Shown one piece after another: positions 15,417-56,763 of a stretch of 64,000 bases of DNA (the stretch's first letter is position 1; each line of letters opens with the position of its first letter). Under the pieces are notes generated by a model. It had not been told where the DNA came from. It saw only the letters and a program-made list of their open reading frames with translations, and searched no databases. The translations under genes and the position numbers were made by a program. Origin of the DNA: Salpingoeca rosetta (lineage: Eukaryota > Protista > Choanoflagellata); assembly GCA_033442325.1 (NCBI GenBank), contig JAWQFM010000014.1, positions 897,792 to 961,791 of the forward strand, in the 5' to 3' direction.

Positions 15417-16866
15417 CGTGTGGGGTGGGGTGCGTGTGTGTGTAAACATGTGTGTCACGTGTGTGAGCGGATATGATTGTGCTGACAACACCAAGGAAAC
15501 GAACGTGAGCATCTTGAGGAAGATGGAGCGGGCGTAGGAGATGCTCTGCAGTTTGTTCTTCTCAAAATAGAACGGAACCGCGCGCAGCTGTTGATTGGTG
15601 GTGGTGGTGGTGGTGGTGGTGGTGGTGGCGGTGCAAAACAAAAAAAGGCGGGGGGTTGATTGAGTGGATGGCGATTCAAGATGCACAAAACTATGAATCA
15701 ACACGAAATCCCGCAATTACAATGGCACACAAGCACGCATGCACACGCACGCACGCACAGACGCAAACACGCACAGCACGCCCGCGCGCGCACACACACA
15801 CACACATGGGCACGCACCTTGTCGAGCTGGTGGATGAGGAAGATGAGCATTTCGAGGAGATCAAACGACTCCGGGTTGGTGCCGACGAAGAACGACACAA
15901 CATCCACGTTGTCCCTGGCGTTCAGCTGCTCCGCGGCCTTGGCAACAAGCGACGACTTGCCCACGCCAGCAGGGCCCGTGATGAGCAGGCCCTTGTTGTC
16001 GGGGTTGGCCTTCAACACGTAGTCCTCAATGTACTTGAGGTCGGCGTCGCGGGCAACAAACCCTTCGCGGCGCGAGCGCACCATGAGCTCGTGCTGCACA
16101 GCAGACAGCTCCAGGGCAGGCAGCTCCGTCTCAAAGGAGGGGTACTCCGCATCAATCGCAGAGAACAGCATGGCGTACACCTAGTGGTGGTGTGGGAGGA
16201 TGGGATGTTGTGTGTGAGGTGGGGTGGTGTAGGTGGTTGGACGGGTGAGAATGGGATGAGAATGGGATGAAGAACAAAAAGGATGGCCGATGACGCAAGC
16301 CATCACGGCACAAAAGCCACTTGCATCAGTCATACATACACGTACACAAGTGCACACACACACGAATATGCACGTGTGCAAACAGATGTACACCTTCTCT
16401 GCGAAGAAGTCAAGACCGCCAACAGAGCCGGTGCCAAAGCGCTTCCCCGTGGGCAGACGACCCGTCTCCTTCACCACGATGGGCTGGCCGGGCTGGTAGT
16501 CAAACGACTTGGCCTTCTTGGTGGCACTGCGGATCTGGCTGGTGATGGTGTCGAGATCGGTCTTGTATTGGGAGTAGAGCGGTGTCTTGGTGTACTGCGG
16601 GGCGAGTGACTCCTTCACCTGCGCGTTCTCCGGCAGATACTCAAAGTCGAAGATCCACTGCCAGTCCTCGTCCACCGCTGTCATGCATTGGCAGTCACAT
16701 GTGGCGTCGAAAGGGGGGTGGCAGGGTGAAGGGAGGCGAGAGGGGGGAGCAGCATGAAGCACGAGGGCGGGTGCTGCTCCTGCATGCTCGTGTACGCTGT
16801 TCGTGTTCATGGTCGTGGTCATGCGACAAACAAACACGTGGATGTGCACATGCAGCCAAGCTTGTG

Positions 16867-16947
<81 letters not shown>

Positions 16948-17383
16948 AACACACGTACTCACAAACACACACGCACACATAAACACATGCAAACATACGC
17001 TGCATGCACACCTGCATACGCAAACACACCCACACAAACACACACACACAAACATACACACATGCACACACGATACATGCACGCGACACGCGGTCCTCAC
17101 CCTTCATAAACTCGTGGTCGCGGAAGGCGAAGAAGGCGTGTGGCTGCTCCATAGTCGCCGCCTCCTGGCCCAGCACGGCGTGCCACACCTCCATGGACGT
17201 GATGGACACGCCTGCAGGGTGCGCCTGCTGCACCTTGGGCATCCACGCAAAGCGATCGGGGTGCTCAAAGTCGTCCGGATCGTTGAATTTCTCCTGCACC
17301 CAACCATAGCGCTTGGAGCTGCAGCAGCGCGCGTGCATTGGGAGGAGGCCAGGCGGAGGGACGGGTGTGAGAGAATGCGTGTG

Positions 17384-17450
<67 letters not shown>

Positions 17451-18817
17451 GCGTGTGTGTGAGTGTGTGTGTGTGTGTGTGTGTGATTGGGGCTGACCAA
17501 GAAGTTTGATGGTCAAAGAACAGCTTGAGCACAGAGACTCAAACGGAGGTGCAACCATGCGCAAGTACCCAATCACGACAACAACTACATCAACACCATC
17601 ACGTCAACAACAAACACGTCACCACCAACACAATGACATGACACTCACACACGGTAACACAAGAAAGACACACCAACACGCAATACGACCGTGCTCACCG
17701 CAGGCCGAGGAACCAGGGCATTTCGTCCTCGTGCACGCGGCAGCGATCGATTTCGTTGAGGCAGGTCTTTTGGATGGCGTCAGCTGTGGACTCTTCAGCA
17801 GACACACCCCAACGCAAATCGACAGGCACAATCTGCACATAGCGTGACGCAAGCTCCTTGTTCAACGCAGGCAGAACCTGGTAGTGTGTGTGCGTGTTCG
17901 TGCGCGCGTGTGAGTGTATTTCGAATGAGCAGCTTGACATAAGCATGTACGAGGTCACACAAAAGCGAAAAGTTGCTTCAATGCACGGCGAACAAAACCA
18001 CACACACACACACACACTCACTCACACACTCACTCACTCACTCACTCACTCACTCACTCAACTCAACTCACTCACTCACTCACACACACGAACCACTGAC
18101 ACACATTGTCCCCTCCTCCCTCCCAAACACACGCACACGAGCGCACCTTGCGGATGAGGACGTCACGCTCGCCGTGCGTGTCGACAAAAGTGGAGGAGAT
18201 GAAGAGGCGGATGGTGGTCATCTCACCCTGCAGGCGCGTCTTGGGCGTCACGCCCTCCATCTTCTCAATCAGCTTCGACTGCGAGTAATCAGGGAACGGC
18301 TCAACAGCGGGCGGCTCCTCAACAGCAGCGGCAGCAGCAGTCGTAGTGGACGACGTCGATGGTGGTGCTGGGGATGGCTTGGTTCTCTTTGGTGGGGAGG
18401 GTGCTGGTTTCTTCGCAGCTGCTGGCGGTGCTTCCTTCGTTGGCGCAGCCCTTGGCGCAGGGGTTGGCTTTGGCTTGGCTGCTTCTGGTGCCTTGGCAGG
18501 CGCAGGCTTCTCCTCCTCCTGCGTCGTGGCAGCCGCGGCGGTGGTGGTGGTGGTGGTGGCAGCGGGTGCAGCTTTGCGCGGGGCAGGAGTTGGCTTGGAG
18601 GGTGCTGGCGTTGGCTCAGGCTTCGTGGTTTCTGCCGTTGTTACAGGTGGTGGTGCCTGCTGCTGCGCAGGGGCTGGCTTGGCGGCTGGTGTTGGCTGCG
18701 AGCTGGAGGAGGAAGGTGCAGCAGCATCGCCGTTCTTGGCACCTGGTGCATGTGAAAATGAAAAAAATCACGCTACACATGAACGTGTGCACCATTGGTG
18801 GAGACGCTGAAAAAAAC

Positions 18818-18873
<56 letters not shown>

Positions 18874-19786
18874 AAACACACAAACACACAAACACACACC
18901 TGCGTGTGCGTACATGTGCAAGAGCGAGCAAACGTCACAGCACCACATCACACCACATCACGTTGCGTCAAGCAAATGTTTGCGACGACGTACGGGTAAA
19001 GGCGTTCTTCCATTCTTCAGCTTGCGGTTCCTCGGCGCTGCAAAAGCAGAGCTTGCGGCCGCCGGAATCGGTGACCACGATGCGGGTCGTCTCGGGGAAC
19101 TTCTTGGACCACTTGCCGAGCGCTGGCAGTGCACGCATCTCACACGTGTGAGAACACACTCATCAAAGCAGTGCAACAAACACGAGAGCACACACAAAGC
19201 ATGTATGCACGCACACGCACGCACAAGCACACACACGCACACGCACACGCACATTATAGCACGCACGCACACATGCATTGCTGTGCCAATCTGAAGACAC
19301 GACACACGTGATTGGAATCGTCAAACGAGCACGCGAGATCACGCACACATACACGCTCACACACCCTCGTACTCACGGGTGGCATCAGCGCCGGTGACGA
19401 TGTTTGTGGCCTTCATCATGATCATGGGAGACTTGTCTCTGGGGGTCTTGTAAATCTTGATGGTGCCTTTTGATGTGGTGGCAGCATTGCAGTTGAAGGC
19501 ATGAGCACACATGCACACTGCGATCGCAATCGCAACACTGCAATAAATTACATGCGAGCAGCCCACTAAACACTTCAAACAAGCCACACACAGACACGCA
19601 CAACACACACAGATACACACAACACACACACGCGCACAACTGCACACACTACACACACACACACACAAAACCAAACAAATCAAGCAGACCTGTGCCATCC
19701 ATGACGGCATGGGCAAACTTCCACTTCTTGAAGAGGCCCGTGCCGGGCATGAGAACGGCGTTCTCGTAAACAGCACCGCTCGACAT
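7330..19786 (-). CDS. PH + Pro/Ala-rich linker + DUF4062 + NACHT NTPase + WD40 repeats (TEP1/NWD-like STAND protein), >25 exons
   Basis: PH-like N-terminal exons (GLFKKWKFAHAVMDGT...TIKIYK...LCFCSAEEPQAEEWKNAF). DUF4062 motif RLFISSTFVDTHGERDVL...VDLRWGVS...CLNEIDRC...WFLGL. Walker A GPAGVGKS at ~15955-15980, Walker B VVVILDGL, then KWLPAQLPDNVRLIVTT and LPLYL. WD40 exons such as VVTCSWDKTIRFWN, IGSYDGKVRTF and AGDYAGTIRWID. ATG at 19786; the 3' end is uncertain. Confidence 0.85.
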
Positions 19787-20001
19787 GTCTGCGATCGTGG
19801 CCGTCTTCCAAGATGACATCAAGCAAGCAAGCAAGGGTGGTGGTGGATCCAGCTCAGTGCAAATCGATTTTGCTTCTCTTCAGTCAGACAGCGCAACAAA
19901 CACAACAACCAACAAAGCAACCTATCGTTGCTGAGTCAGCACAATTTTCATTGCCGCCAAAATTTGAAAAGCAACAGAACAACACAACAGCAACAGCAAC
20001 G
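19787..20001. promoter_or_regulatory. Probable bidirectional promoter between the NACHT-WD40 gene and kinesin-14
   Basis: Head-to-head ATGs at 19786 (-) and 20002 (+), about 215 bp apart. Confidence 0.6.
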
Positions 20002-25290: not shown

Positions 25291-25935
25291 ACACCTCCAA
25301 CAGCAACTTTGCCTGCCCCTTTTCTGAAGTCTTTGCATGGTGGTGGTGGTGGTGGTGGTGGTGGTGTTGTTGTGTTGTTGTTGTTGTTGTTGTTTAAGTT
25401 GTTTAAGTTGTTGTTGTTTAAGTTGTTGTTGTTTAAGTTGTTGTTGTTGTTGTTGTTGTTTAAGTTGTTTCAGTTGCTGTTGTTTAAGTTGTTGTTGTTT
25501 AAGTTGTTGTTGTTTAAGTTGTTGTTGTTTAAGTTGTTGTTGTTGTTGTTGCTGTTGTTCAGAAAACCTTGTGGTGGTGGTGGTGGTGGTGGTGAGTTCT
25601 TGCGTTTTGCGTTCTTACGTTGGTGACAACCTCGTAAACACTTAAACAGGAGAGGTGTTGAACGATGTGATTGTTGGAGAAAGGAGATCTCGAGTAGGTG
25701 CTGAGTGAGTGGCGCAGATTTGCAAACACTTGCATGTGCCACATGACTTTAGGTCACAGCGTCTGCCTCTTTGACACGGGTCCGTGCACATGCTTCGTTC
25801 TTGTACGACCAAGCTGTGGGCTTTGCTGCGGTTCATGCTCGGTCGGACACTCACTTGTTTGGCTCGAAACCAAACAATAATCGCGTTCAACACATACAAC
25901 AACACACAACGCAGAGAGCAGCACACACACACACA

Positions 25936-26084
<149 letters not shown>

Positions 26085-26305: not shown

Positions 26306-29300
26306 TCAGCTCAGTGGCAACGCAAGCTCAGCCTCGTGCAACAGCTGGTCAATGCTGGGCTGCCCTTCCCATGGCTGCAAGGCCTTGTGCACGAAATGCT
26401 GCATACCTCGCGCGCGACGTAAGGTTGCTCGTGCACGTGGTTCTGGGTCCGATTCAGTCCTCGGCAGTCGACGATCACCTCGGTTTGCTTCGGCCTCAGT
26501 GTTGGAAGGCGCATGGCTGCGGTCTGCAGAGGGTCCGCCCAGCTGGGATTCCAGGCCATCAAGATCCTGGATGGACGACTCGAGGCGTCGCTTGCATTGC
26601 ACGTCTCTCATGACACTGCTCGCGCGCTGCAGGTGCTTGCTGGCTCTGTGCAATCCCGGCAAAAGGTACTGCTGGGAAAGGCCTGGCTTCAGCGGCCGAG
26701 TAGGGTGCTGCTGCACACAGCGCCGCAAGTTTGCAACACACTGTTTTGCAAGCGTGACTGCCTGGGCTGGAAAAGCACGTGCTAGCTCACTGGCTGCCTG
26801 TGCCTGTATCGTGCCCAGCTTGTGCCGCTCCGCCCTCGAGTGATCATTGGTCTCGACGAACGCTTCCAAAGGCTGTAGGATCGCCGCCCACTCAGTCTCG
26901 GGGTTCCCGCTGCTCCCACTGCTTGCCATTGTAGACCAGCTGGTGGCTGGCCGTGGGTGCGTGAAAATCAGTCGCAGCTGAGTTTTGAGAATGGCAACCT
27001 GTCCCCTGGAATCTGTGTAGCCTGACTCCTCCATGTCGTCGTCAAGCGAGTCCAGTACGCCGTACACAGAGTCGAACACGCCCTTGTTGCCACGCTCGTA
27101 CGTCATCTGGATCCATTTTGGCATCTGGCACAGGCCGTCACCCCCACTCTCATCAGCCGTCAGTAGCACCAGCCAGGGCTTTAAACTCAACCCGGCCTCG
27201 CAGACATCACGGAACGCCGCCTTCATACAGCGGACGATCTTCTGAGCGACAGCCCTGCGCACGTCGGTGGAAGCATACGCACCCTCTTGCAGAGCAGAGA
27301 GAACGATGCCGCGCGATCTCAGCAACGGGAACGCCCACAGCATCGACGTCAGCCGTTCCCGCCCACCAGTGCCATCATTGCGGCGTACGAGCCACTTCCA
27401 CATTGGTAGCTCCACGCCCGTGCCAGGAAGCCAAATGTCGCTGATGTCACATCCAGCCATCACCTCAAGTAGCGCAAGCCGCTGTAGGCGAGATTGGGTG
27501 TCTTCCGGGACGGCGGCAAAACAGCTCTTAAGCATGCGAAAGGCGGCGCAGCAGTTCCCCAGTGACACGGCTGCACTGAGCAATGTGACAGGCAGATGGT
27601 CTGGTGTGTTCTCCAGCTCCCGCACGCGCTGCTCGGCCTGGGGGCAGTGCGATGCGTAGTGCTTGATGAAGCGCGGCTTCTCTTCGTCGATCAAGAACGG
27701 ACAGAACATAAACTCAGAGGCACCATCACGGGACGCGACGTACCGCTGGCACAACTTCACGTAGAACAACACGAACAAAGCCCCTTTCCTCGCCATGCAC
27801 GACCTCACACAGCGATCAATGTCTGAAATTGCGCGGCTAATGTCTTGGTCGGCGAGCACGAGGACACGCCGCGTCGTGGTCGTCACATATTGCGAGAGCA
27901 AGTTTTGTAGCTGTGGGCCCACTTGCCGAAGGTCGCATGCGCGTGGCACCCAAACGCAGACGTCGTGTCGCCTCCTCTCAACAAATGCCCGCGCCACCCG
28001 CTGAAGGCTCGTGGTCACGCCGATACCTTGAAACGGCGCCTTCCCGTACACAAAGTGACTCGGTGAGCCTGCATGCTGTTGCTCATCAAAAATCGCGTCC
28101 AGTTGAGACAGTAACGACTCATCCTGCAACCGATCCACCGCGGCAGTGTCAACCAAGCTCCACGGCAACTGCGCCTCGTTGACACCATCAACCTCACCGC
28201 CGTCACTCTCGGAGCCGTCGACGGCCTCTGCTGCTGCCGATGTGGCCGGTACATCTCGTCTCCCTGCCAGAAACCGCTGCACACACGCATGACCCTCGCT
28301 TGTGGCGGGGTGTGGGCCGAGAAGCTGACTCTGGTGTGGCACAACCATGCAGTGACTGATGGGAGTTGTGGGTGCCGGCGTCGTGCAAGTGGCTTCACGC
28401 ACCACAGAAGAAGGTGGCTGCGCTTCAAGCAACGACGCCAAGGATGGCAAGAGCCTCACGTCTCTCACGCAGTGGTGCGGGGTGTCCGAGAGGTATCGCC
28501 GGAACATCTGCAGCGCGGCCTCCAGACGCCCTGGCTCTGTGTCAACAACGCTCACCCACACCTCCATGTCGGGTAGACTGCGACACAGCGCCTGCACACT
28601 TTCGGTTTCCAGCCCCAACGCCATGATGACACCGCTCGGTCCTTGCCATGGGATGTTGCCCACAGCATTCACGTCGAACACTTGCATCCAATCAGGGAAC
28701 CTTGCGCTGCGCGCGTCCACAACAACCGGCATGGGGTGCGCGCCGATGCTGGGTGGCCTGAACAGGAGATGTGGTGTTACTCGATGGCGATGAAACGCCC
28801 ACGCCGCGAAGGGGGTCAGGGCCACAACATGTTTGCCGTCCCATATGGGGCAGTCAAACTTGTCCATGTTCCATAAGACGGTCGGATGCCCAGATACACA
28901 GGCGCGCTTTGCATCGAATTCCACTTCAACTAGAATCAACGGCTCTCCCATGCAAAGGTCGTCATACTCGCGCACGCACAGCGGCACTTCCACCTCCTTC
29001 CCAGGCTTCTTGATCCGCCACCCACGCAACTTTTCATCACGAACCTCGAACACCCCTTTGGCTGTGCTCGCCAGCGCGCACCACTTTCGGTGGCCAGCAC
29101 CACCCCGTCCTGTAGCTTGTTGCCGCTCAGTCATCACCGCCCCTCTGAACAGCACCATTTTGTCCTGTCCAGTCGCCTTGGCCATGCGCCTAAAGTCGTC
29201 TTCCGAAAGCACGTACACCGTGTTGCCTTCGGCTTGCCACAGCTCTTCAATTTTCGGTGCCACTACCCTCTTCACTCGCACAATCACGTCAAGCTGGGGT

Positions 29301-30835
29301 GCTGGAAACAGCCTTTTCAGGTAGCCGTGCAGTTGCTGTGAGATGTTTGATGCCAGGGTCTCCAAGTCAGCGTCCTTTGGGGACGGGTTCACGGGGATTC
29401 CCACCACGCTGCCGTTGTCTGCAACGCCGATGCCAATGTATGCACGCCTTGGCGCGCGTGAAGCATCCAAGGCGTACATCTCTGCCATGTAGTTGCGTGC
29501 ATGCTCCAGGACCTTGCGCTGAATTCCCGCTGGTGTGGGTTCGTCGAGCTGCACAGTCTTGTACTCTCTGACGTTGCTTTCAGGTGGGTGGCGGTGCAGG
29601 GCCGATGTGGTCGAAACCCGGTCCGCCATTGGCTCGGATGGAGGTGTTTGCAACACCATGGCGGGGGCGATGCTTGCCAGGCCCATGTGCAGCTCTGCAT
29701 CTGACACAGGCTTCGATGTCGCCCCGCTCCGCTTCGATCGGGTGTACTGGAGCATCAAGTGCACGTCTGCCGTTGTGCGCACAATGTCCAGCCTGAACCG
29801 CCCATGCGTGCCTTTGAGTTTGAACATGCGCACCACACTTCTGCGGTCGTCACACTCGACGCTTTGGTGTGTTGCTGCTTCGGGTTGTCCGTCTTCGTAC
29901 CGTTGGCCCAAGTCAGGGTGGTTGAAGGCGGCCGCGTCCACCTCAAATGGGCCGTCGATGATGGGTGCATGACAAAGGCGGTCGCTCAAGCTCGTGGCAA
30001 TGCCTTCTCCGGTCACCTTTGCCGCGCCGTTGACAAAAATGCTGCCGCACACGCGAGAGTTGTGGAAGGCGGCCACGGCACGTGTCGCTTCAGTAACGTC
30101 CGCCACTTCCACAATTGCAGGGGTGGTCATGCTGGTGTCGTGGGCGGTGGTGGTGTTGTGCGCGGTGGTGGTGTCGTCGACGGTGGTGTCGTCGACGGTG
30201 GTGTCGTCGACGGTGGTGCTGTGGGCGGGGGTTTCGTCGACGGTGGTGTTGTGGGCGGGGGTTTCGTCGACGGTGTTGTTGTGGGCGATGGTGGTGTCGT
30301 CGACGGTGGTGCTGTGGGCGATGGTGGTGTCGTCGACGGTGGTGCTGTGGGCGATGGTGGTGTCGTCGACGGTTGTGTCGTCAACGGTGTTGTTGTGGGC
30401 GATGGTGGTGTCGTCGACGGTGGTGCTGTGGGCGATGGTTGTGTCGTCGACGGTGTTGTTGTGGGCGATGGTGGTGTCGACGGTGGTGTCGTCGACGGTG
30501 TTGTGGGCGATGGTTGTGTCGTCGACGGTGGTGCTGTGGGCGGTGGTGGTGTCGACGGCGTTGTCGTGGGCGATGGTGGTGTCGTCGACGGTGTTGTGGG
30601 CGATGGTGGTGTCGTCGACGGTGTTGTGGGCGATGGCTGTGTCGTGGACGGTGGTGCTGTGGGCGGTGGTGGTGTCGACGGTGGTGCTGTGGGCGGTGGT
30701 GGTGTCGACGGTGTTGTCGTAGGCGATGGTGGTGTCGATGGTGGTGTCGTCGACGGTGGTAGCGGTGTGGGTCTGGGCGGACTCAGTGCTGGAGTCAGGC
30801 TGCTGCAGCTGGTCGTGAAGAGGTGTGCCTAACAT
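26306..30835 (-). CDS. Intronless SAMD9/SAMD9L-like protein: Thr/Asp repeats, Schlafen AlbA_2 domain(s), Rossmann/SIR2-like segment, STAND P-loop NTPase, helical C-terminus (~1509 aa)
   Basis: Uninterrupted 4.5 kb ORF with no microsatellites; first ATG (MLGTP) at 30835. AlbA_2 signature PESNVREYK...YIGIGVADNGSVVGIPV at ~29585-29390, DWMQVFDVN, RFLAGRR..LPWSL..AVDR, P-loop PFQGIGVTTSLQRVA at ~28040-27995, Walker B VLVLADQD, then FLIDEEKPRF. Confidence 0.75.
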   Translation of the reverse strand: MLGTPLHDQLQQPDSSTESAQTHTATTVDDTTIDTTIAYDNTVDTTTAHSTTVDTTTAHSTTVHDTAIAHNTVDDTTIAHNTVDDTTIAHDNAVDTTTAHSTTVDDTTIAHNTVDDTTVDTTIAHNNTVDDTTIAHSTTVDDTTIAHNNTVDDTTVDDTTIAHSTTVDDTTIAHSTTVDDTTIAHNNTVDETPAHNTTVDETPAHSTTVDDTTVDDTTVDDTTTAHNTTTAHDTSMTTPAIVEVADVTEATRAVAAFHNSRVCGSIFVNGAAKVTGEGIATSLSDRLCHAPIIDGPFEVDAAAFNHPDLGQRYEDGQPEAATHQSVECDDRRSVVRMFKLKGTHGRFRLDIVRTTADVHLMLQYTRSKRSGATSKPVSDAELHMGLASIAPAMVLQTPPSEPMADRVSTTSALHRHPPESNVREYKTVQLDEPTPAGIQRKVLEHARNYMAEMYALDASRAPRRAYIGIGVADNGSVVGIPVNPSPKDADLETLASNISQQLHGYLKRLFPAPQLDVIVRVKRVVAPKIEELWQAEGNTVYVLSEDDFRRMAKATGQDKMVLFRGAVMTERQQATGRGGAGHRKWCALASTAKGVFEVRDEKLRGWRIKKPGKEVEVPLCVREYDDLCMGEPLILVEVEFDAKRACVSGHPTVLWNMDKFDCPIWDGKHVVALTPFAAWAFHRHRVTPHLLFRPPSIGAHPMPVVVDARSARFPDWMQVFDVNAVGNIPWQGPSGVIMALGLETESVQALCRSLPDMEVWVSVVDTEPGRLEAALQMFRRYLSDTPHHCVRDVRLLPSLASLLEAQPPSSVVREATCTTPAPTTPISHCMVVPHQSQLLGPHPATSEGHACVQRFLAGRRDVPATSAAAEAVDGSESDGGEVDGVNEAQLPWSLVDTAAVDRLQDESLLSQLDAIFDEQQHAGSPSHFVYGKAPFQGIGVTTSLQRVARAFVERRRHDVCVWVPRACDLRQVGPQLQNLLSQYVTTTTRRVLVLADQDISRAISDIDRCVRSCMARKGALFVLFYVKLCQRYVASRDGASEFMFCPFLIDEEKPRFIKHYASHCPQAEQRVRELENTPDHLPVTLLSAAVSLGNCCAAFRMLKSCFAAVPEDTQSRLQRLALLEVMAGCDISDIWLPGTGVELPMWKWLVRRNDGTGGRERLTSMLWAFPLLRSRGIVLSALQEGAYASTDVRRAVAQKIVRCMKAAFRDVCEAGLSLKPWLVLLTADESGGDGLCQMPKWIQMTYERGNKGVFDSVYGVLDSLDDDMEESGYTDSRGQVAILKTQLRLIFTHPRPATSWSTMASSGSSGNPETEWAAILQPLEAFVETNDHSRAERHKLGTIQAQAASELARAFPAQAVTLAKQCVANLRRCVQQHPTRPLKPGLSQQYLLPGLHRASKHLQRASSVMRDVQCKRRLESSIQDLDGLESQLGGPSADRSHAPSNTEAEANRGDRRLPRTESDPEPRARATLRRARGMQHFVHKALQPWEGQPSIDQLLHEAELALPLS
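30125..30760 (-). repeat. Coding tandem repeat encoding (H-N/S-T-T-V-D-D-T-T-I-A)n at the N-terminus of the SAMD9-like ORF
   Basis: About 20 imperfect 27-33 bp units (GTCGTCGACGGTGGTGCTGTGGGCGATGGTG on +), all preserving frame. Confidence 0.9.
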
Positions 30836-31209
30836 CTTGGCTGGTTGTTTGCGTGGGTTGTCGAAAATCAAACGAAGACATTGCAAAGCAGTATCAGATG
30901 CGACAGCTGATTCACGCCAACGAAAGGTGCGCCGGCAAGTCGAAACACCATCTCCACCAAATCGACCCGGCGGACGACGACGGCCGCGACAACCGGCACA
31001 CCCCAACGTTTGCACAGGCAGCAGCGGGACAACGCGCCAACCGCCGCGGCCGCGGACGCAGGGCCATCACCACTACCAACAACATCACCAACAACACTCA
31101 CGCCACCAACAACACCTCTAACAACACCACTACCACCAACAACACCTCCGACGACACCACGCCCACTACCACCACCACCACTACCGCCACCACCATCGGC
31201 AGCAGCAGC

Positions 31210-31285
<76 letters not shown>

Positions 31286-31801
31286 CCGGGGGCAACCCCG
31301 ACCCGCGCCACGGCACGGGCAACGAGCGGTCAAGGGCCACTACCGCACAGATTCAGGGCCCACGGAGAGCAGCGACGCAACCGACCACCACGCGCTGCCC
31401 CATCGACACCACCAGCCAGGTGGAGACCAACGGAAACCGCAATGAGGAAGCGGCCTCCCAACCTGCGCAGGCGTCCTCCCACTGAGTCTAGACCCAGTGG
31501 CCTTTCTCCGGGCCTGAGGGCCCCTCTCTCTCCCCTCACTCAAAGCTGCCTTGCCTGCTCTCCGCCCGAGTGGTTTCGTTTTATTTATCACACCAATCCC
31601 CGTGTCCCTTTGCCTGGCTCGGTTGGCTTCACCGAGTGTCTCTTCCCCCATCGGTTTTTTTTTATTGCATGCTCCTCCCCGCTCGTCTCGCTTTCTTTCT
31701 TTGCTTCTTCGCCTGCTGGTCGGCACCGTGTCGTCTGCGTTCGAAGCCCGGCCCAGCCGGGGCAGGCGACACCATAAAGTTTTGATGAACCCCCCCCCCC
31801 C
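30823..31801 (+). mobile_element. Possible retroelement remnant: ORF fragment with Cx2Cx19Hx4C, a TFAQAAA motif and poly-Asn, then a structured 3' end closing with ATAAA and a C12 run
   Basis: ORF 30823-31485 (CVGCRK...IHANERC; PTFAQAAAG; RRGRGRR). Hairpins at 31618-31636 and 31728-31772, CATAAAG at 31773, C-run 31790-31801. No RT, integrase or transposase is visible. Confidence 0.3.
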
Positions 31802-31850: not shown

Positions 31851-32746
31851 ATGAGCTTGGGCGCCGCCGTGTTCGTTCGTCCACAGACACTTGCCCGCTT
31901 CGATCGAACCATGAAGGTGCTCCTCAAGCAGTCACCCATGCGTGTGAGTTCGTCTCTCGCGTTGTTGCCCTCGTTACCTCACTGTTGCCGCATTCTCTGC
32001 ACTGCACTGCATCTCTTCTTGCAGGAGACTTGGCTGCTCAGGCACAACAAGCCAGTGCCTGCTACGGCCTGACAATGTCGGGTCCCCAGATGGCTGAGTA
32101 CGCAGCGCAAGCTCAAGGCAGAACTCGAGTCAAGCGGCATGCGGAGTTTGACAGACTGGCTTCATTCGTTCGTGAGTTTAGCTGTGAGCTTGTGTTTGAA
32201 CTGCGCGCACACGTGCGCGCGGGTGTGCGTGTGGATGAATTCGTGTGTGCGTGCGTATGTACACGTGTGTGTATGTGAGTACATGTGTGTGTGTGCGTGG
32301 ATACGTGTGTACGCGTGTATGTGTGTGTGTGTGTGCATGTACATGCACATGTGTGTATGTATACGTGTGTCCGTGCGTTTGTGCACGTGTATGTACGCGC
32401 GTGTGTGCACGTGTACGTGTGTGTGTGTGTCTGGCTATGTGCACGTATACATGTGTGTGCACGTGTGCACGTGTGCGTGTGGTGTTCTGTGTGTGTTTGC
32501 ACATGCAAGTCCAATAGTGCTTTGCGAGACCCTAACGTAAGCACCGTCTTGCACCTACACACTAGAGACCTCCAGGCTAGCTCGGGTTTGGGCTCGCATT
32601 ATGACCGCGAGAAACCCTGGTCAAGGTCGAGGCGCGCATTGAAGAGCTGCGCAGAAACCAGCACTCACTTCGCAGTCGAGCAACCCGTTTACAGACGTAA
32701 CGGCCGGTGCAGACCAGCCAGGACGCCAGCGACAAAGACTTCTACA

Positions 32747-37201: not shown

Positions 37202-37898
37202 ACACCTCCAACAGCAACTTTGCCTGCCCCTTTTCTGAAGTCTTTGCATGGTGGTGGTGGTGGTGGTGGTGGTGGTGGTGGTGGTGTTGTTGTTGTTGCT
37301 TAAGTTGTTGTTGTTTAAGTTGTTGTTGTTTAAGTTGTTGTTGTTTAAGTTGTTGTTGTTGTTGTTGTTGTTTAAGTTGTTTCAGTTGCTGTTGCTGTTG
37401 TTGTTCAGAAAACCCTGTGGTGGTGGTGGTGGTGGTTGCATGTGGTGAGTTCTTGCGTTTTACGTTGGTGACAACCTCGTAAACACTTAAAACAGCAGAT
37501 AAACACTTAAACAGTAGAATGAGAGGAGCAGGAGAGGGTGTTGAACGATGTGATTGGGGGAGAAAGGATATCTCGAGTAGGTGCTGAGTGAGTGGCGCAG
37601 ATTTGCAAACAATTGCATGTGCCACATGACCTTAGGTCACAGTGTCTGCCTCTTTGACACGGGTCCGTGCACATGCTTCCTGCTTGTACGACCAAGCCGT
37701 GGGCTTTGCTGCGGTTCGTGCATGCTTTGCTCAGACACTCACTTGTTTGGCTCGAAACTCATGCGAAAACATCCAAGAATTATCCACAACCACAACCACC
37801 AGCAGACCAGCAACGCTGCAAACAAAAACAAACACGGCGCGCTGACCTTCCGACTTTGTGCTCTTCTTCTCTTCTTGGTCTCCTCCCTTGCTTGGAGT

Positions 37899-39161
37899 AT
37901 GGTGACGAGAAGAAGACCTGGATGCCTGCAGGCACGTGCGTTACTGCCTTTCATGATGCTAGTCCTTGAGCTGCTGGCGGCAGTGTGCTGGATGCCGTTC
38001 ACCATCTCGGGTGAGGTGGTGATGGTTGAGGATGAAGCTGGTGCCTTCCACGTCAACACCAGCGATACCATGAACCAGCCCGTGTTTGTGAACGGCATGA
38101 ATGTGCATGAGACGCTCAGCACGCTGATGAGCGCCGTCTCGGTGCAGCAGAGCGCTATCAATGTACAGCAGAGCTTGCACGCTGAACTCTGCCAGGTTGC
38201 GAGGCGTGCCGATATGTTAGGGCAGCTTGGATCACGAGGTGGGAAGTGGGTTGGCGGCGTGCTGGCCAACAACGGTTTAATCTACGCTGCGCCATACAAC
38301 TCGCCTTCCGTGCTCATTATCAATCCGAGCACAAACACCGTTGATACGACCACAATCTCCGTGCTCCTTGAGAATGGTGCGAAGTGGGCGGGTGCGGTGT
38401 TGGCGCACAACGGCTTCGTCTACATGTTTGCGTCAACACAAGCAACCATGCTCATCGTCGACCCGGACACCAACACCACTGACACATCGAGTATCCACTC
38501 GCTGGGCTCCGGCGTCGCCAAATGGCGGAGCGGTGTTGTGGCCAGCAATGGCCTCATCTTCGGCATCCCCTCTTTTGCAACGTCTGTGCTAATTGTTGAC
38601 CCGGAGACCAATGTCGCCGACCTCACCACGCTCTCTGGGCTGTCGAACCATGAATTCAAGTGGTATGGCGGTGTACAGGCAGACACCGACCTCATATACT
38701 GCATTCCCGTGACGGCGTCCTCTGTCCTCGTCATCAATCCAGAGTTGCTCACGATGGACCTCACCACATTGGCTGGTTTTGACACGGGCTACAAGTGGCG
38801 CGGGGGCGTGCTTGCAGGCAACGGTCTCATCTACGCCGTCCCGTCTCGCTCTGCGATGGCCCTTATCATTGACCCAGCCACCAACGCCAGCCGCCAGCAC
38901 CCAGTCACGGAGCGAACCAGCTTTGGACAGTGGCTTGGCGCTGTGCTTGCACCCAACGCCAACATCATCGGCATCCCATACGACTCGTCATCTGTTCTCA
39001 TCTTCGACACCACCACCACCAGCATCAGCGACACCACGACCATCAACGATCTTGAAGAAGGAGGCACCAAGTGGTGGGACGGAGTGCTCGCTCCGAACGG
39101 CCTCGTCTATGGTATTCCATTCAACGCCGAATCTGTCCTCGTCATCGACCCAGGGTGCTGA
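37899..39161 (+). CDS. Intronless secreted/membrane-anchored protein with 7 KWxGGVLAxNGxIYxIP...VLIIDP repeats (predicted 7-blade beta-propeller)
   Basis: ATG at 37899 (MVTRRR), hydrophobic LLPFMMLVLELLAAVCW, HVNTSD..PVFVNG motif, short coiled segment, then seven ~45-aa repeats ending VLVIDPGC-TGA. Confidence 0.82.
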   Translation: MVTRRRPGCLQARALLPFMMLVLELLAAVCWMPFTISGEVVMVEDEAGAFHVNTSDTMNQPVFVNGMNVHETLSTLMSAVSVQQSAINVQQSLHAELCQVARRADMLGQLGSRGGKWVGGVLANNGLIYAAPYNSPSVLIINPSTNTVDTTTISVLLENGAKWAGAVLAHNGFVYMFASTQATMLIVDPDTNTTDTSSIHSLGSGVAKWRSGVVASNGLIFGIPSFATSVLIVDPETNVADLTTLSGLSNHEFKWYGGVQADTDLIYCIPVTASSVLVINPELLTMDLTTLAGFDTGYKWRGGVLAGNGLIYAVPSRSAMALIIDPATNASRQHPVTERTSFGQWLGAVLAPNANIIGIPYDSSSVLIFDTTTTSISDTTTINDLEEGGTKWWDGVLAPNGLVYGIPFNAESVLVIDPGC

Positions 39162-44433: not shown

Positions 44434-45116
44434 CTCGCACGCACACACACACACACACGAAAACTCGCACGCACAACACATACACACACACACAACACAT
44501 ACACAACACACACACACACGCCAACACCAACAACACATACACGTAAATGCTCACCCTGCTTGGCTTTTTCGAGGCGTCGGCGCTTCTTGTGACGTGTGTC
44601 ACGTGCGGGAAGTAGGCTAAAAGCGGCGAGTGGCATACCGCCGCGCGGGCTTGTGACGAGCACGCGGGTGTTCACCAGCAGCTCTGCGTTGGTCTTCACG
44701 TCCGACACAAACGTGACCTTCGGCATGGCCTTTGATGGCCGCGTGCTGCTGCGTGCCTGCGACGTGGACGACGTTGCGAAAGCATCACGCAGCCGTTCCA
44801 TGTCTCCACTTGTCAAGCGCCTGCGCCGGCGCTGCGACTGCTGGTGCTGTGACGTGAGATCGGTGCCGTCAGATGCAAGCAGGTCGGTGGCTGCCATGCC
44901 CATGAAAGAATGGCGGGTGCTGGCATGTCCTGATTTCGGCCGCTGCGGCTGCTGTCTGCGCACAAGCGCGGTCTCTGCATCCTCATGGTCGTACTCGGAG
45001 TCGCTTGCCCCGAGAACAGGCTCATCCTCATCCCCTGTCAGCGAAATCCCCGCCAAGAACGCCGTCCCATCTCTGCGTATCCTCTCCACACCCCGCGCCC
45101 GCAACACATTCGCCAT
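43095..45116 (-). CDS. CABLES: CABLES-like cyclin-box protein (CDK5/ABL1 enzyme substrate), 3 exons
   Basis: AFLAGISLTG, LDDPFLHHGRHQKMLSL, ELKEALNESFRERFPDIQLTLSKLRSLK and TVAFAHYYFEHLVLK...RKLIPACCLLLAFKFN. Confidence 0.88.
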
Positions 45117-45283
45117 CTCTGCTTCTCTCCTCTTCTGCTTCTGCTGTGCCTTGAATCGACGAAAAATAGCTCAAATCATTCATCAGAATTCTACAACCGC
45201 ACTGCCGCTGTGGAGCGACACAAACAAACACGATAGCCAGCAGCACACCCACACATACACCAGCCACCAACCAACCAACCGCC
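45117..45283. promoter_or_regulatory. Probable bidirectional promoter between CABLES and VPS26C
   Basis: Divergent ATGs 167 bp apart. Confidence 0.55.
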
Positions 45284-48357
<3,074 letters not shown>

Positions 48358-48464: not shown

Positions 48465-51177
48465 TTAAAGTGAGAATCGATGCCGAGACCTGTGGCGGTC
48501 GGGATGTGATGTCGAGGGTCAGTTTGCACGTGGTGGTGGAGGCCAGAGGGAAGACCACATGCACATGCAGCAACATAGCACCAGCACAATGAGCTACCCT
48601 CCCCGCAGCACATACAACAATGCGAAGAACACGAACAACGTGTGAACCAACACACGGCCCCACCCTCTCCTCTCTTCTCTACTCTTCGTTGTGAACCTGA
48701 GGTCGTCGACGGTGAGTTTGTAGAAATCGGACGGGAGATCCACACGCATGGCGGCGGCGATGGCCGCACCACGCGGCGGCTTCAGCACCCTGATCCCGTG
48801 GTAGTGGTGGTGGTGGTGGTGATGAGATGAGATGGGGGGGGGGGAGGCAGTGGTCAGGAGAGGCATCACGACACACACACACACACACACAGACACACAG
48901 ACAGACACACACACACACACACAGACACACACACAGACCCCCCCCCACACACACCTGACGTCGCGGTGGAGGCGGCAGATGATGGTTTGGTCGCTGGAGA
49001 TGACATCTTTTGCTGTCGTCAGTTCGTCCGTGGACACTCCTTCTGGCAGCGCAAGGAACGTCTTGCCATCCTCTGCACACAGCAAACCCGACAGCGCGTG
49101 CATGTGTCAAGGAGTGGCGCGTTGTGACATGAGTTGTACGACCATGCGAGGTCTTGCGGGAACCAACAAGCAACAAGCATGTCCGTTCGGTCCATTCTCT
49201 GAGCATTATCCACCATCATTGCCGTTGCCAACATCTTGTCGCACCTTCGCCGTTCTCTTCCTCAAAGCCAACGGCCTTGAGAAACTCCAGCGCCCCCTCA
49301 GCCCCCAGGATGCGTGCCTGCAAGCAAGGTGACCAAAACCACACACACACACACACACACACACATGGTACAAAAAGAGAACATGGGAACAAGCGTGTCA
49401 TCTGGCCAAGCAACAAGATGGGGCGCCACGACCGCCAGCGCACCTGAAAGGCCTTGTTCTCCTTGTTGATGCGCCGGTACTTGGGCTCGTCCGGGTGCTG
49501 CAGCACATTGTTGATGTACCTGCAGCAGCAATGCACACACACACACATAGACAGGCGCATGTGAGAGAAGTCTTGTCATCGCACAAACGCGTGATGATAT
49601 CGGCAGCCACATGCATCTGCACACGCACACGTACACCTTCACACTCACACATGCATGTGCTCACGCGGGAACATACGCGCATATCGTCTTGACGGCGAGT
49701 TCTCGCTTCTCCCGGGAGTTGAGTGTCCACACCATCTTCGCCGCCATCGGCACCGGCATCTCCGTCAGGCGCTGGCGAGATGCACAAGGTGTGAGTGAGT
49801 GAGTGGAGTGTGAGTGAGTGAGTGGAGTGTGAGTGAGTGAGGGCGAGGGTGAGCAAGGGCGAGTTCAGCAACAACGGCGCTCGTTCGCTCGCCCGGCATG
49901 CTTTTGCCCTTTCTCGCATACGCAGCAGACCTGTGTTAGCTCTCGTCGGAGATGGTCTGTCTTGTCGCGTTCGCGAACGAGGTTGCCTGTGATGGGACAC
50001 ACCACTTGCACCTGGGTGGGCGGCAGCCAAGGGCGACACACGTGAGGGAGGGAGGGAGAGAGGTGCAAACAGTGTAAGGCGTGGTCGAAAACAGAGATAC
50101 ACACGGATGCACACAGAGATACACACGGATGCACACAGAGATACACACGGATGCACACAGAGATACACACGGATGCACACAGAGATACACACGGATGCAC
50201 ACACACATGCACACAAGCGTTGCCTGACCTGAAGGCGGTCTGCTTCCTGCTTCCATTGGCCCGCAGGCTGGTCGCGTGAAGGCGTGGCCGTCGACGGTTG
50301 AGTGCCGCTGCTGGCGGCCTCTGCCTGCACCTGGCGACGGGCCTCGCTCTTGATGGCGCTGGATGTGTTAGGCCTCCCCGTCTGCTGGGCGCGCTGCATC
50401 CGCTCCTGCGCAGCCCGCGCCGCCTGGCTCATCTCTGCAAGGCGCAGACACAGTTGGTTCACGGCAGTCAGCAGGCAGGTGTGTGGTGAATGGACAGAGA
50501 TGGCGAGAGGGATGCAAGGAGAGAGGAGGGGGATGGTATGAGGGGAGGGGGGAGGTGGGGGAGAACACAGACACGGACACACACAGACACACAGACACAG
50601 ACACACACATACACACACAGACACACAGACAGACACAGACACAGACACACACAGACACAGACACACACAGACACACACAGACACACACAGACACACACAG
50701 ACACACAGACACACACACACACAGACACACACAGACACACACACCGCGAGGCTGCTGTCTGCCTGACGCCGATGCATTCCTCGCCGTTGACGCTGAGGAT
50801 GAAGACGAGGATGCGGACGCTGGCTGCCCTTGAGACGCCCCTTCCACGCCCAGGCGATGGCCTTCAAGCAGAAGGGCAGACAGAGGATACACGACAGCAC
50901 GCCAACAAGCAATAAGCAACACCGCCACACTTGGCAAAGTCGAGCGAGCGTGCGTTCCTGCGTGCGTGCTTGATGGCCTTCCTCCCTCACCATCACACAC
51001 ACACACACAGACACAGACACACAGACACACAGACACACACACAGACACAGACACACAGACACACACACACACAGACACACAGACACACACACAGACACAG
51101 ACACAGACACACACAGACACACCTTCGCCAGCCCTCTTGAACTTGCGATCCTTCTTGAACCTGCGAAACAAGTCCAT
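48465..51177 (-). CDS. UBXN6: UBXN6/UBXD1-like p97 cofactor (N-terminal motif, VIM, PUB domain); UBX domain not found
   Basis: [39 protein letters not shown] motif [39 protein letters not shown], and [14 protein letters not shown]. The next exon gives SRHRFSL-TAA at 48465. Confidence 0.8.
50091..50200. repeat. 22-bp intronic minisatellite (ACAGAGATACACACGGATGCAC) x5
   Basis: Read directly. Confidence 0.9.
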
Positions 51178-51474
51178 CTTGGCTGTTGCTTCGCCGTGCT
51201 GCTTCGTTGTTTGTATTCGTGCCAGTCTTGCTTGTTGCTTGTTGCTTGCTTCACTTGTTCTTCTTCTTGTGGTCGTGGAAGAATCAAGCAAGGGGGAAGG
51301 AGAGCAGGTAACATAACAATAACAACATGCAGCTGAGAGAGGTAATCACTAAGGAAGAGGAGAGAGGAGCAGAGGAGGCAGGCTACCAAAGAGCCAGCAA
51401 CAACGCGCGCGCGCGTGAACGAGAAGCGACAAATAAAACAAGGGCACTCGCCCATCACCACCCATTCACCCCAG

Positions 51475-54014
51475 TCAACCACCAAGCCCGTCGCTGTGTA
51501 CGGCGTTGGCATGGCTCTCTCCGTTCTTGAAGGTGACGGTGACGCGCTGGCCGTCCTTGGCCACCCTCAAGATGGGCTTGAACTCGTAGTAGTTGGTCGT
51601 CGTCTCCGCCCACGACAGCACGGGCGGGTCAACGGTGATGTTGACGCCGTTTGGGTAGTGCAGTGCCGTGTACGCATACACCACGGTCGGAGCAGTGCAC
51701 GTCTGCGGCGTGCGTGTGAGTGAGTGAGTGAGTGAGTGAGTGAGTGAGTGTGAGAGTGAGTGAGTGAGTGAGTGAGTGAGTGAGTGTTCATATGTGTGTG
51801 TGTGTGTGAGTGTGCGTGCATGAGTGAGTGAGTGTGAGAGTGTGAGAGTGAGAGTGCGTGTGTGTGCATGAGTTTGCGTGCATTTGTACATACATGAACC
51901 TTATTCAACCACCCTATTCAGCCACCCTGTTCCCCCTTCTTCCACGTCTCTGTATCTCCTCCTTCCCCTCGGCACCTTGTTGAGGAGGAACGCAAGCTCG
52001 AAGGTGCTGTTCTCGCGGGAAAAGTGCATGTCAACACCGTGGCCGGCGATAATGGGCGCATATGTGCGCGTCAGGTTGAACACCATGTCGCTGTTCACGG
52101 TGCCGTTGCTGTTCCAGAACCCGAAGTTGGAACCCGTCTTTGGCACAAACGCCTGTCACAACATAGGGTGAAGGGGAGTGTGGACGGCGCGGAGAAGGAG
52201 GAGGAGGAGGAGGAGGAGGAGGAGGAGGAAGCCTTGTGTGAGTGTGCATACGATCGAGAGCACAGTGTATGCATGTGTAGTGTGACATAACAACGGCAGA
52301 GCATCAGTGTCACACAAACACACACACACGCACAGACACAGACACACACACAGACACACAACACGCAATCACTGTGCTCACTTTGTATTCCCATCGCATC
52401 CACGACTGGAAGAACGGATCTGCCGTCTCGAAGAACACCTCGCCGTCCGTCTGACGATGACAATGATGATGATGGTGATGGTGGTGGTGACAGTAACAGC
52501 GAACCATGTAAGAAAAGGGGACAAGGTGTAATGTTGTGGTGAGCACAAAGCGAACCAGCGACGGCCGCAGCTTTGCGTGCACGCGCGCATGTGCAAGCCA
52601 CAAGCATGCAAGCACAGCACAAGGCAACACGCTGCAATGCACCACAGTATCACCCACTGTAGCACCATTGCACCACAACAACCGCGGACCTCCGAGCAGA
52701 ATGTGCCGCAGTTGAGTTTCTTTGCGGCATCGAGATGGAGCTGGATTGTCTCCTTGGGGCCAAAGTTTGGCGGCATGTAGTACTGCAGGCGCCGACAGGA
52801 GAGGGAGGGGCGCTGATGGTGAAGGCGGTGAAGGGGATCGAAACACACATACACACAAACACACACGCACACAGACAAAAACAAAAAAACAAAACACAGA
52901 TACAGATACACACACACAACCACACACACGCACACAGACAAAAAAAACACAGATACAGATACACACACAACCACACAACCACACAACCCCCTCCTCCTCC
53001 AATTTCTCCCCTCCTGCTCATGTCGCGCCATCCACAGCACGCAGACTGACGTGGTATGCGAGGACGCTCTTGTGGCCGCTGTCAGCGCCGCCGGGCGGGT
53101 GCGAAAACCCAACAACGACATCGTCCCACGTCACCTGGTAATGCATGCGCACACATGAATGAAGAGGGTAAGTTTGATGGTGAGAGAGAGAGAGAGAGTG
53201 TGTGTGTGTGTGTGTGTGAGTGAGTGAGTGTGTGTGTGTGCGTGTGTGCGTTTGCCCTTGTGTCTGCGTGCGGTTGAAGACACAACTTGGCTCCAACTCA
53301 CCGTTTCGAAGAAGATGGGTGTATCGGGATCAACGGCCCTGACGCAATCATCCCACACAGCACCACACGCGCGCGCGCAGTCGATGAGGAGAGAGAACAA
53401 GCGGTGGAACGTCACGACAGCATGCACAAGACATACAGCCTACAGGCGCATGCGCAATCAACCAAAGAAAGAGCACACGCATGCATCAAGCATGGCACCT
53501 GATGGCAGCGGCAGCTTTATCGTATGTGTTCTGCAGGTTCTTCTTGTCGGCCTGACCGGGGACAAGCAGGTCAGGGTCCTTGTTCACATCGCCTGCGCGC
53601 CGTGATGGCAAATAGTGCGAGGAGGGATGAAGTGTCGTGTTACAGAGGGGTGGACTGAAAGTGCAAGGCTTTCACGCAAAGGCGACACGGCGACACAGAC
53701 AGACAAACAGACGGACGGACGGACGGACAGACAGACAGGCAGCCAGACACACACACACACACACACACACACGCGGGCGCGGCCACGACCACAACGCTGA
53801 CCTGCCCAGGGCTCATTGATGAGCTCGTATCCGAGGATGTTGGTGTAGGACTTGAAGGTTGACGCGACGAGTGCCCAGAAGCTGCAGAACGCATCGAGAA
53901 GGCCATCTTGGTTGTCGTACATGCGCTGCACAGCCGCGCCCACCGCTGCCACGCGGCGAGAAGGGAGATGTGTGTGCGAGCGAGTTCGTGTGTGTGTGTG
54001 TGTGTGCGTGAGTG

Positions 54015-55887: not shown

Positions 55888-56763
55888 GCTCAACCAACCC
55901 ACACACACACACGCACAACACTGCAAACACAAACAAACCAAAGTGGTGGAGTTCGCGGCTAAATGCTGGCACCCGACACGATGAAAAGTAATGAAATTTC
56001 GTAGAAGATATGTGGGAAACCCCGTTTCCGAACAAACGGTGATTTGTGAAAGATGTCTCCTAGTTTTCTCATGCTTCCTTCCATCAAACAACCGCCGACG
56101 ACAACGCAGCAACAACTCTGCATTCTCCCTGCTTGGTTTGTGTGTGAGCGTGCAGGCAACCGAACGAACAGATTCATCATCGTCGTCCATCCATCGTTCT
56201 TCTTGCCTTCTTCTTGCCTTCATTCCTCCCCCCCCCTTTGGTGTGCCTGTGTCTGTTCCATTACCACCCTCAAGGACGCGCAAGTCACCCCCACAAAGGT
56301 TTGTCGACTTGCTTCGCATGGCATTGCCTACTCTGTTGCGTTGCGCAGGTTTGTTGTTTCGGCCTTGTTGGTTTTTTTCCCGCCTATTTTTGAGTGTCGC
56401 TTTTGCTGGGTTGTGCTGGCGCGCTTACGGTCGCCAGCGCGAATCCCCAAGCGCGACCCACCACCTCCGCATACACACAAACTTCACTTTTTTTTTTTTT
56501 TTTTGGAGAGCAAGAGGAGGAGGACGAGCAGTAGGAGGAGGAGGAGCTCCTCTTTGCAGTCTTCCTCGTGACGTGGGTGCTGTCTCTCTCTCTCTCTCTC
56601 TGTCTTCTTGTGCAAGTGTGATGCTCTCACACACATTCACACACACGCACACACATTCACACACACACACACATTGACGACCACACACAAGACCACCGTC
56701 ATTGTTGCATGCGCATGTGCGCGAGAGTCCTTGGCGGCCAGTGCAACGAAGCCGCGCGTTGGA

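Follow-up and report, generated by a model that had tools for sequence, protein, structure and literature searches.

Does any unicellular relative of the animals encode a protein of the SAMD9 type? SAMD9 and SAMD9L (SAMD9/9L) are major antiviral and disease genes whose origin is debated, with bacterial transfer, vertical descent and convergence as the candidates. A survey in 2017 found the SAMD9 family in animals and bacteria only (Mekhedov et al., PMC5445408), and a Foldseek survey in 2025 reported no hit in plants, fungi, algae or protozoa (Legrand et al. 2025, PMC12680541). The question is raised anew by a stretch of 64,000 nucleotides from Salpingoeca rosetta (contig JAWQFM010000014.1, positions 897,792 to 961,791; hereafter the window), in which a 4.5-kb open reading frame (ORF) had been predicted from the DNA letters to encode a SAMD9-like protein of a unicellular holozoan. 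The host is such an organism, a choanoflagellate, and the ORF is a real gene of it. The gene belongs to a small family of single-exon nuclear genes that extends across the choanoflagellates and whose products probably have the architecture of SAMD9 and Avs9, with a putative N-terminal nuclease that would act on RNA.

The protein family and its STAND-containing body

A full pass of HMMER (phmmer) against 1.84 billion protein cluster representatives identified nine relatives of the S. rosetta protein (E 6e-30 to 1e-4), which are collinear with it over three blocks at about residues 350-545, 650-820 and 880-1300. Five of the nine are labelled and come from Microstomoeca roanoka, Mylnosiga fluctuans (two), Stephanoeca diplocostata and Monosiga brevicollis (XP_001747368), while the remaining four are from unlabelled metagenome or read-archive contigs. 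The labelled relatives cover both choanoflagellate orders, so the gene must be old within this group. The paralog counts that had been proposed as a follow-up to the original prediction come to one or two copies per labelled species. Those relatives that derive from transcriptomes were recovered as complete ORFs, indicating that the family is expressed in the species concerned. No animal, bacterial or viral homologue was found among the 1.84 billion representatives (for bacteria, at E<0.001), and word-index protein searches with the S. rosetta protein returned only the query itself. A tblastn search of plasmids and phages gave no match, and a viral structure library gave only generic AAA+/STAND-like matches (best 6.2e-5, TM-score 0.11); a viral origin is not supported.

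Some members of the family have peculiarities of their own. The closest homologue, that of Microstomoeca roanoka, carries an insertion of about 100 residues in the helical repeat region (near columns 1660-1760 of the family alignment) which the other members lack, and it has no Pfam domain at E up to 0.1. A homologue of 945 residues on a 4960-bp contig (JGI 3300059473) begins between the AlbA-like and SIR2-like parts of the protein, and a 215-residue ORF upstream overlaps its start by 17 nt. A frameshift, an intron or an error of assembly at this place may have divided the gene.

The body of the S. rosetta protein (residues 690-1509) was modelled with AlphaFold2 from an alignment of 10 sequences, giving a mean predicted local distance difference test (pLDDT) score of 66.5 and a predicted template modelling score of 0.61. 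A structural comparison with SAMD9 had been suggested when the ORF was first described, and when the model was compared by Foldseek with 350,542 chains of the PDB, ranks 1 to 6 were occupied by cryo-electron microscopy structures of human SAMD9 released in 2026 (E 1.4e-9 to 2.3e-7, 794-851 aligned columns). These alignments cover the whole query of about 820 residues, including the part upstream of the P-loop. The next match, the SIR2-STAND antiphage protein Avs5 (filament structure 9nc9, about 749 columns, E 6.5e-5), falls short of these by four orders of magnitude, and it is followed by a TPR-STAND protein, NRC1, CED-4, Avs4 (8dgf, E 1.8e-3) and Apaf-1. The order of parts in the model is that of a STAND protein, namely a nucleotide-binding domain, a helical domain, a winged helix and a repeat array.

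Upstream of the P-loop, the original prediction had pointed to a Rossmann-like segment at PVVV..DWMQVFDVN. This stretch lies in a part of the model with low confidence, while a beta-alpha-beta-alpha-beta-alpha unit of Rossmann type is modelled further on, at residues 736-803. The unit falls within the full-length Foldseek alignments to SAMD9 and Avs5, which are not superpositions of the individual domain, and residues 691-861 have no Pfam SIR2 match. The nucleotide-binding domain is matched at the P-loop by the Pfam profile nSTAND_NTPase5 in 5 of 10 family members, the best with E=0.004, all under the cut-off of 34 bits. Across the 10-member alignment G939 of the Walker A motif is present throughout, T941 and T942 are each found in nine members, and R946 is invariant. 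The position of the Walker A lysine (residue 940) is taken by V, T or A in every member, with T in Monosiga, and never by K. Toward the C-terminus, a profile of the family gives weak TPR matches in the helical region when searched against PDB sequences (IFIT5 and SPAG1, E about 0.05). There is no Pfam TPR match in this part, and support for TPR-like repeats is structural only.

The N-terminal region and its putative nuclease domain

The domain that precedes the body, at residues 405-690, is tentatively assigned to the AlbA_2/Schlafen type on the basis of four weak lines that agree with one another: a Pfam match, structural matches, conserved residues, and its position N-terminal to a SAMD9-like body. 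When the isolated domain is searched against Pfam, SLFN_AlbA_2 is the sole match (E=0.024, 15.6 bits), with residues 465-504 aligned to profile positions 33-69; the full protein gives E=0.19. In an AlphaFold2 model of residues 236-700, only residues 423-525 reach pLDDT values of 60-84, and they form a strand, helix, strand, strand, helix and strand in that order. Foldseek ranked Schlafen domains (SLFN14, 11, 13 and 5) or rabbit SAMD9 tRNase domains in all of the first ten places for this model (E 0.1-0.3), and 20 of the best 25 matches are Schlafen or SAMD9 domains, at E 0.098-0.8 over about 110 columns each and from a model of low pLDDT. This pattern of ranks is taken as real, if slight, evidence from a predicted structure.

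The residues conserved in this domain were counted in an alignment of eight sequences. E419 and K426 are present in all eight sequences. E424 is retained in six, with D in one and Q in the other (Monosiga), and D473 in seven, with N in Stephanoeca. An acidic residue occurs at position 444 in six of the eight and a histidine at 445 in seven, while Y449, G470, G479 and P481 are found in every sequence. No other columns of the region are as well conserved as the AlbA_2-type motifs, and the loop after the first strand of the domain is 11-98 residues long. In human SAMD9, tRNase catalysis depends on E184, E196, E218 and D241, and the binding of tRNA on K198, K214 and R221 (PMC12331169). The order acidic, acidic-x-Lys, acidic, Asp is common to the sequences of the family and of human SAMD9. 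Based on this order and on spacing, rather than on a residue-level superposition, the conserved residues of the family would be the equivalents of E184, E196, E218 and D241. The original description of the site as apparently intact thus holds for the residues themselves, since E419, E424, D473 and K426 are all present in the S. rosetta protein and conserved in the family, while the profile and Foldseek scores of the domain stay below their thresholds.

Ahead of this domain lies a further region that is conserved in the family, residues 236-404, which has no Pfam match and in hhalign shows no similarity to the AlbA region. That residues 240-404 might be a second, degenerate AlbA lobe in the manner of the Schlafens was considered and rejected, as hhalign gave a probability of 0.3% against residues 405-560.

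A number of results weigh against a SAMD9/Avs9-type protein with an N-terminal nuclease. No curated profile in Pfam, NCBIfam or PADLOC reaches its cut-off with the full protein (in PADLOC, no family at all at E up to 1, Avs models included), and HMMER detects no similarity to SAMD9, SLFN or Avs proteins, either with the single sequence or with the family profile; the PDB sequences searched include SAMD9 and the Schlafens, and the cluster representatives were searched with the single sequence. Recognition by the curated AlbA_2 profile is not reached, with 12.7-15.6 bits across the full protein and the isolated domain against a cut-off of 25.3, and the isolated domains of three other homologues have no AlbA_2 match in Pfam. 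No Foldseek match of the N-terminal model passes E=0.001, the model itself is poor (mean pLDDT 44.8), and both structure models were built on alignments of only 8-10 sequences. The matches of the body to SAMD9 have TM-scores of 0.21-0.26, a root-mean-square deviation of about 27 A and identities of 9-11%, low TM-scores and large deviations being expected where the packing of the domains differs. The Walker B aspartate D996 is kept in only 5 of 10 members, and the family alignment reveals no conserved His or Lys that could replace the missing Walker A lysine. Finally, no SAM domain is matched by a profile at E up to 1, and the model has no beta strands, and hence no OB fold, in the last 78 residues.

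It is possible that the protein is a generic STAND NTPase with helical repeats, having N-terminal domains that are peculiar to its lineage and not related to either AlbA_2 or SIR2, and that its likeness to SAMD9 comes from the STAND core together with errors of the model. The sub-threshold AlbA_2 scores, in the S. rosetta protein by Pfam (15.6 against 25.3 bits) and Foldseek (E at or above 0.098), the three homologues whose isolated domains go unmatched, the missing Pfam matches for SIR2 and TPR, and the low TM-scores are all compatible with such a protein. A STAND core would not by itself place SAMD9 at least four orders of magnitude ahead of every other STAND protein in the PDB, however, or align the query from end to end, including the part upstream of the P-loop, and the runner-up, Avs5, is itself a SIR2-STAND protein. 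Likewise, ten best matches that are all Schlafen or SAMD9 domains among 350,542 chains are not expected of a random fold, and the motifs in question are the best conserved of their region. A generic STAND protein is therefore considered improbable.

Alternatively, the architecture could be as described, but with an AlbA_2 domain that is inactive as a nuclease or does no more than bind nucleic acid. In that case the protein would not be an immune effector but a STAND protein with a regulatory or scaffolding function, in stress or cell-state signalling for instance. The replacement of E424 by Q in Monosiga and of D473 by N in Stephanoeca would fit this alternative, as would the degenerate Walker A and Walker B motifs and a copy number of one or two per labelled species, unlike that of expanded immune receptor families; the domain of human SAMD9 was itself first described as a DNA-binding domain (7ksp). 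Yet the S. rosetta protein has all three acidic residues as well as K426, two of the four (E419 and K426) are invariant in the alignment, and the D-to-N change is also seen in some mammalian SAMD9L proteins, at D241 (PMC12331169). The closest structural relatives of the N-terminal domain are, moreover, all nucleases. A protein without nuclease activity is thus unlikely, if somewhat less so than a generic STAND protein.

If the protein is a SAMD9/Avs9-type nuclease, its activity, trigger and immune role can be sketched on the model of SAMD9/9L and of the Avs proteins of bacteria. The C-terminal repeats, the presumed sensor, would keep the protein in a closed state until a ligand or a signal of stress is detected. 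Binding of nucleotide, rather than its hydrolysis, would then drive opening or oligomerisation of the STAND module. The N-terminal nuclease, with E419, E424 and D473 acting together with K426 and the acidic-His pair at 444/445, would be freed to cut RNA, most likely tRNA, and translation would be shut down. That this response is directed against giant viruses, as was also suggested at the outset, is pure conjecture.

Known systems and the question of origin

The system that the family most closely resembles is SAMD9/SAMD9L (9zjr, 9zjs and 9zjv; tRNase domain 7ksp and 9o0d), whose order of AlbA_2-type nuclease, variant SIR2-like domain, STAND P-loop and helical repeats is also predicted, with the first two domains putative, for the choanoflagellate proteins. 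SAMD9 is the best structural match of the body and among the best for the N-terminal domain, and the acidic-x-Lys motif and later Asp of the choanoflagellate proteins are comparable to E196/K198 and D241 of human SAMD9. The Walker A lysine is missing in both. The SAMD9 family has GGT/S in place of GKT/S at this motif (PMC5445408), and human SAMD9L binds NTP with no detectable hydrolysis (bioRxiv 2026.02.01.703102). In contrast to SAMD9, the choanoflagellate family has V, T or A rather than Gly at position 940, with no conserved upstream His seen, and its N-terminal acidic residues are 5 apart, whereas E184 and E196 of human SAMD9 are 12 apart. The choanoflagellate protein further differs in having neither SAM nor C-terminal OB fold, in its lack of HMMER similarity to SAMD9, and in the extra conserved region at residues 236-404, to which S. 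rosetta alone adds an array of decapeptides. Within the SAMD9 family, SAM occurs only in vertebrate proteins (PMC5445408).

Among bacterial proteins, Avs9 has the order predicted for the choanoflagellate proteins, AlbA_2, SIR2, P-loop and TPR without SAM, a likeness drawn from its published description (Legrand et al. 2025, PMC12680541). Avs5 and Avs4 share the layout of effector, STAND module and repeat sensor. The choanoflagellate gene differs from those of bacterial Avs9, Avs5 and Avs6 (AVAST) in that its context and composition are eukaryotic, and it has no PADLOC match and, among the 1.84 billion representatives at E<0.001, no bacterial homologue. With the Schlafens (SLFN5, 11, 13 and 14), whose structures rank highest among the matches to the N-terminal model, the family would share an AlbA_2-type core in which the first two acidic residues are five apart and are followed by Lys and by a later Asp. 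The body that follows is a STAND NTPase, however, and not the linker and helicase of the Schlafens, and hhalign did not find the second AlbA-like lobe. The classical STAND and NLR proteins (Apaf-1, CED-4, plant NRC/ZAR1 NB-ARC proteins and the TPR-STAND protein 6mfv) have the same layout of nucleotide-binding domain, helical domain, winged helix and repeats. Foldseek probabilities to Apaf-1, CED-4, NRC1 and 6mfv are 0.98-1.00; SAMD9 is matched better than they are by four to six orders of magnitude. Unlike these proteins, the choanoflagellate family lacks the Walker A lysine and has a nuclease-type effector and a SIR2-like spacer instead of CARD, CC or TIR.

Taken together with the predicted structures, these comparisons suggest that the S. 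rosetta protein is a very divergent member of the SAMD9/Avs9 type, to which a family-specific N-terminal region has been added and which is without SAM and OB. The original designation as a SAMD9-type protein is borne out by the order of domains and by the best structural match, in a predicted structure, and not by a SAM domain, an OB fold or HMMER similarity. The protein is not classed as a SAMD9 orthologue because sequence-level membership, the OB fold and SAM are lacking, even though the architecture and the structural match are there.

The results further suggest that choanoflagellates possess a SAMD9/Avs9-type protein that was missed by the published surveys; a search of the full text of the literature that combined choanoflagellates with SAMD9 or Schlafen gave no relevant result. 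The family may have arisen by vertical descent from an ancestor shared with animals, by a separate transfer of a gene like Avs9, or by convergent assembly, the last of which has been proposed for Avs9 and SAMD9. The homologue of Monosiga brevicollis (CH991557.1) is intronless, like the S. rosetta gene, with 3504 nt for 1167 residues and a stop codon. Since the gene has no introns in two intron-rich genomes, an old transfer or a retrocopy would fit, and a prokaryotic origin would fit with its lack of introns as well. In vertebrates, the coding sequence of SAMD9/9L likewise occupies a single exon. One tentative scenario, with the odds somewhat against it, makes the choanoflagellate family and animal SAMD9/9L sisters by vertical inheritance. 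The last common ancestor of the two lineages would then already have had a single-exon gene for an AlbA_2 nuclease, SIR2-like domain, lysine-less STAND module and helical repeats, which it may have owed to a single old transfer from bacteria. If this is true, shutting off translation by cleavage of RNA would be a pre-metazoan immune strategy, and the published view that SAMD9-like proteins are missing from protozoa would have to be revised.

Because the family occurs in both choanoflagellate orders, and choanoflagellates are the sister group of animals, it would provide the missing outgroup for the question of whether SAMD9 is ancestral or acquired. Proteins of the SAMD9 type would also appear to be able to diverge past the reach of sequence profiles, and the family is perhaps under-counted elsewhere. 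For S. rosetta, a model organism in which innate immunity is already studied, the protein is a candidate immune effector of the nuclease type.

The gene, its features and its surroundings

The minus-strand frame is open over 26306..31015, with its first ATG at 30835. The public annotation of S. rosetta (GCA_000188695.1, scaffold GL832966.1) has a single-exon gene of 1509 residues over the identical range of 4530 nt, in agreement with the intronless ORF first described, for which no strand had been stated. All eleven motifs quoted at that time are found in the order given: PESNVREYK (residues 418-426), YIGIGVADNG... (466-481), PVVV (703), DWMQVFDVN (715), RFLAG (854), LPW (890), AVDR (899), GIGVTT (937-942), VLVLADQD (991-998), CQR (1029) and DEEK (1050). 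The features of the gene are collected in Table 1.

Table 1. Features of the single-exon gene, in the order of the protein from its N-terminus; positions are those of the window
Feature	Residues	Position	Strand	Basis or remark
Whole single-exon coding sequence	1-1509	26306..30835	minus	1509 codons and stop; stop codon 26306-26308; annotated identically in GCA_000188695.1
30-bp tandem array, about 19 copies	26-229	30149..30760	minus	Tandem Repeats Finder score 562
Family-conserved N-terminal region, no assigned fold	236-404	29624..30130	minus	alignment; R369 and A372 invariant; pLDDT <50
AlbA_2/Schlafen-like putative nuclease domain	405-690	28766..29623	minus	sub-threshold Pfam SLFN_AlbA_2, Foldseek, core pLDDT 60-84
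E419-x4-E424-Y-K426 strand, putative catalytic acidic pair and lysine	419-426	29558..29581	minus	residue conservation
G470-V-x-D473 ... G479-x-P481, third putative catalytic acidic residue	470-481	29393..29428	minus	conservation; aligns to Pfam AlbA_2 profile
Rossmann-like (SIR2-like) domain	691-861	28253..28765	minus	secondary structure, pLDDT 63-74
Acidic disordered linker	862-886	28178..28252	minus	pLDDT <50
STAND-type P-loop nucleotide-binding domain	887-1050	27686..28177	minus	nSTAND_NTPase5 matches and Foldseek
Walker A, without lysine	937-942	28010-28027	minus	
Walker B strand	991-996	27848-27865	minus	
Helical domain and winged-helix-like module	1051-1192	27260..27685	minus	model, pLDDT mostly 80-92
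TPR-like array of paired helices, presumed sensor	1193-1431	26543..27259	minus	ten long helices, pLDDT 80-95
C-terminal tail	1432-1509	26309..26542	minus	predicted disordered with one helix, pLDDT about 30

The ORF had been described as free of microsatellites. It contains no microsatellite of 1-6 bp, but its 5' part holds the 30-bp tandem array listed in Table 1, which encodes a decapeptide rich in Thr, Asp, His and Ala. The array is specific to the S. rosetta lineage, with no counterpart in any homologue of the family alignment. The stretch is open in four of six frames, and its openness is thus no evidence of coding. Its GC content at third codon positions (GC3) is 0.94, compared with 0.67 for the rest of the ORF, and the first conserved block begins 14 residues after the next Met, M236. 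Because of these properties, the openness of several frames, the high GC3, the absence from homologues and the placement of M236, translation of the array is uncertain.

A last alternative is that the ORF is not a functional choanoflagellate gene and is instead a contaminant, a decaying recent horizontal insertion, or an annotation artefact of a GC-rich frame. An intronless ORF in an intron-rich genome, with a GC content slightly above that of its surroundings and a 5' part made of a tandem repeat open in several frames, might give this impression. The scaffold is 1.67 Mb long, however, and the ORF is placed between a spliced kinesin gene and other eukaryotic genes, and the GC3 of residues 236-1509 (0.67) is within the range of other long exons in the window (0.62-0.69). 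Contamination or recent transfer was rejected on these grounds of genomic context and host-like GC3, and either contamination or a recent insertion at this locus is unlikely. The frame is also intact over 1509 codons, collinear homologues occur in four other choanoflagellate genera and include complete transcriptome ORFs, and nothing similar is found in plasmids, phages or the viral structure library. The chance that the ORF is anything other than a functional choanoflagellate gene is accordingly judged very small.

The statement that nearly all other genes of the window are heavily spliced applies to two neighbours, which are about 65% intron (5351 nt for 619 residues and 4722 nt for 547 residues), and fails for an annotated gene of 195 residues at 30898-31485, which has a single exon. 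This gene is on the plus strand, head-to-head with the ORF and 62 bp from its ATG. Its product is of low complexity and rich in Thr and Asn, including about 25 Asn in a row that are encoded by a CAA repeat. Pfam gives no match for it, and the gene may be a spurious model over repeats. On the other side, 3' of the stop codon of the ORF, a (CA)80 microsatellite (98% matches) and a compound repeat of the TGT/TTAAG type are found at 25365-25559 and 25922-26082, in what is either the 3' untranslated region or the intergenic space between the ORF and the kinesin gene.

A second large gene of the STAND type is situated on the minus strand at about 16306-19819, roughly 6.5 kb downstream of the ORF, and continues beyond. 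In a precomputed Pfam list its product of 2003 residues has AAA_16/NPHP3_N (NACHT-like) matches and many matches to WD40 beta-propellers. The two STAND genes are thus within about 15 kb of one another, with the kinesin gene between them. Elsewhere in the window, the plus strand has a long exon with a bromodomain (E=1e-15) at 56608-58950 and another with a DUF6923 match just under its cut-off (26.4 against 27 bits) at 37581-39161. Several long ORFs, among them those at 49398-51512 and 44596-45846, have no Pfam match, and at 32223-32476 there is a group of imperfect, GT-rich tandem repeats whose periods are 18-34 bp.

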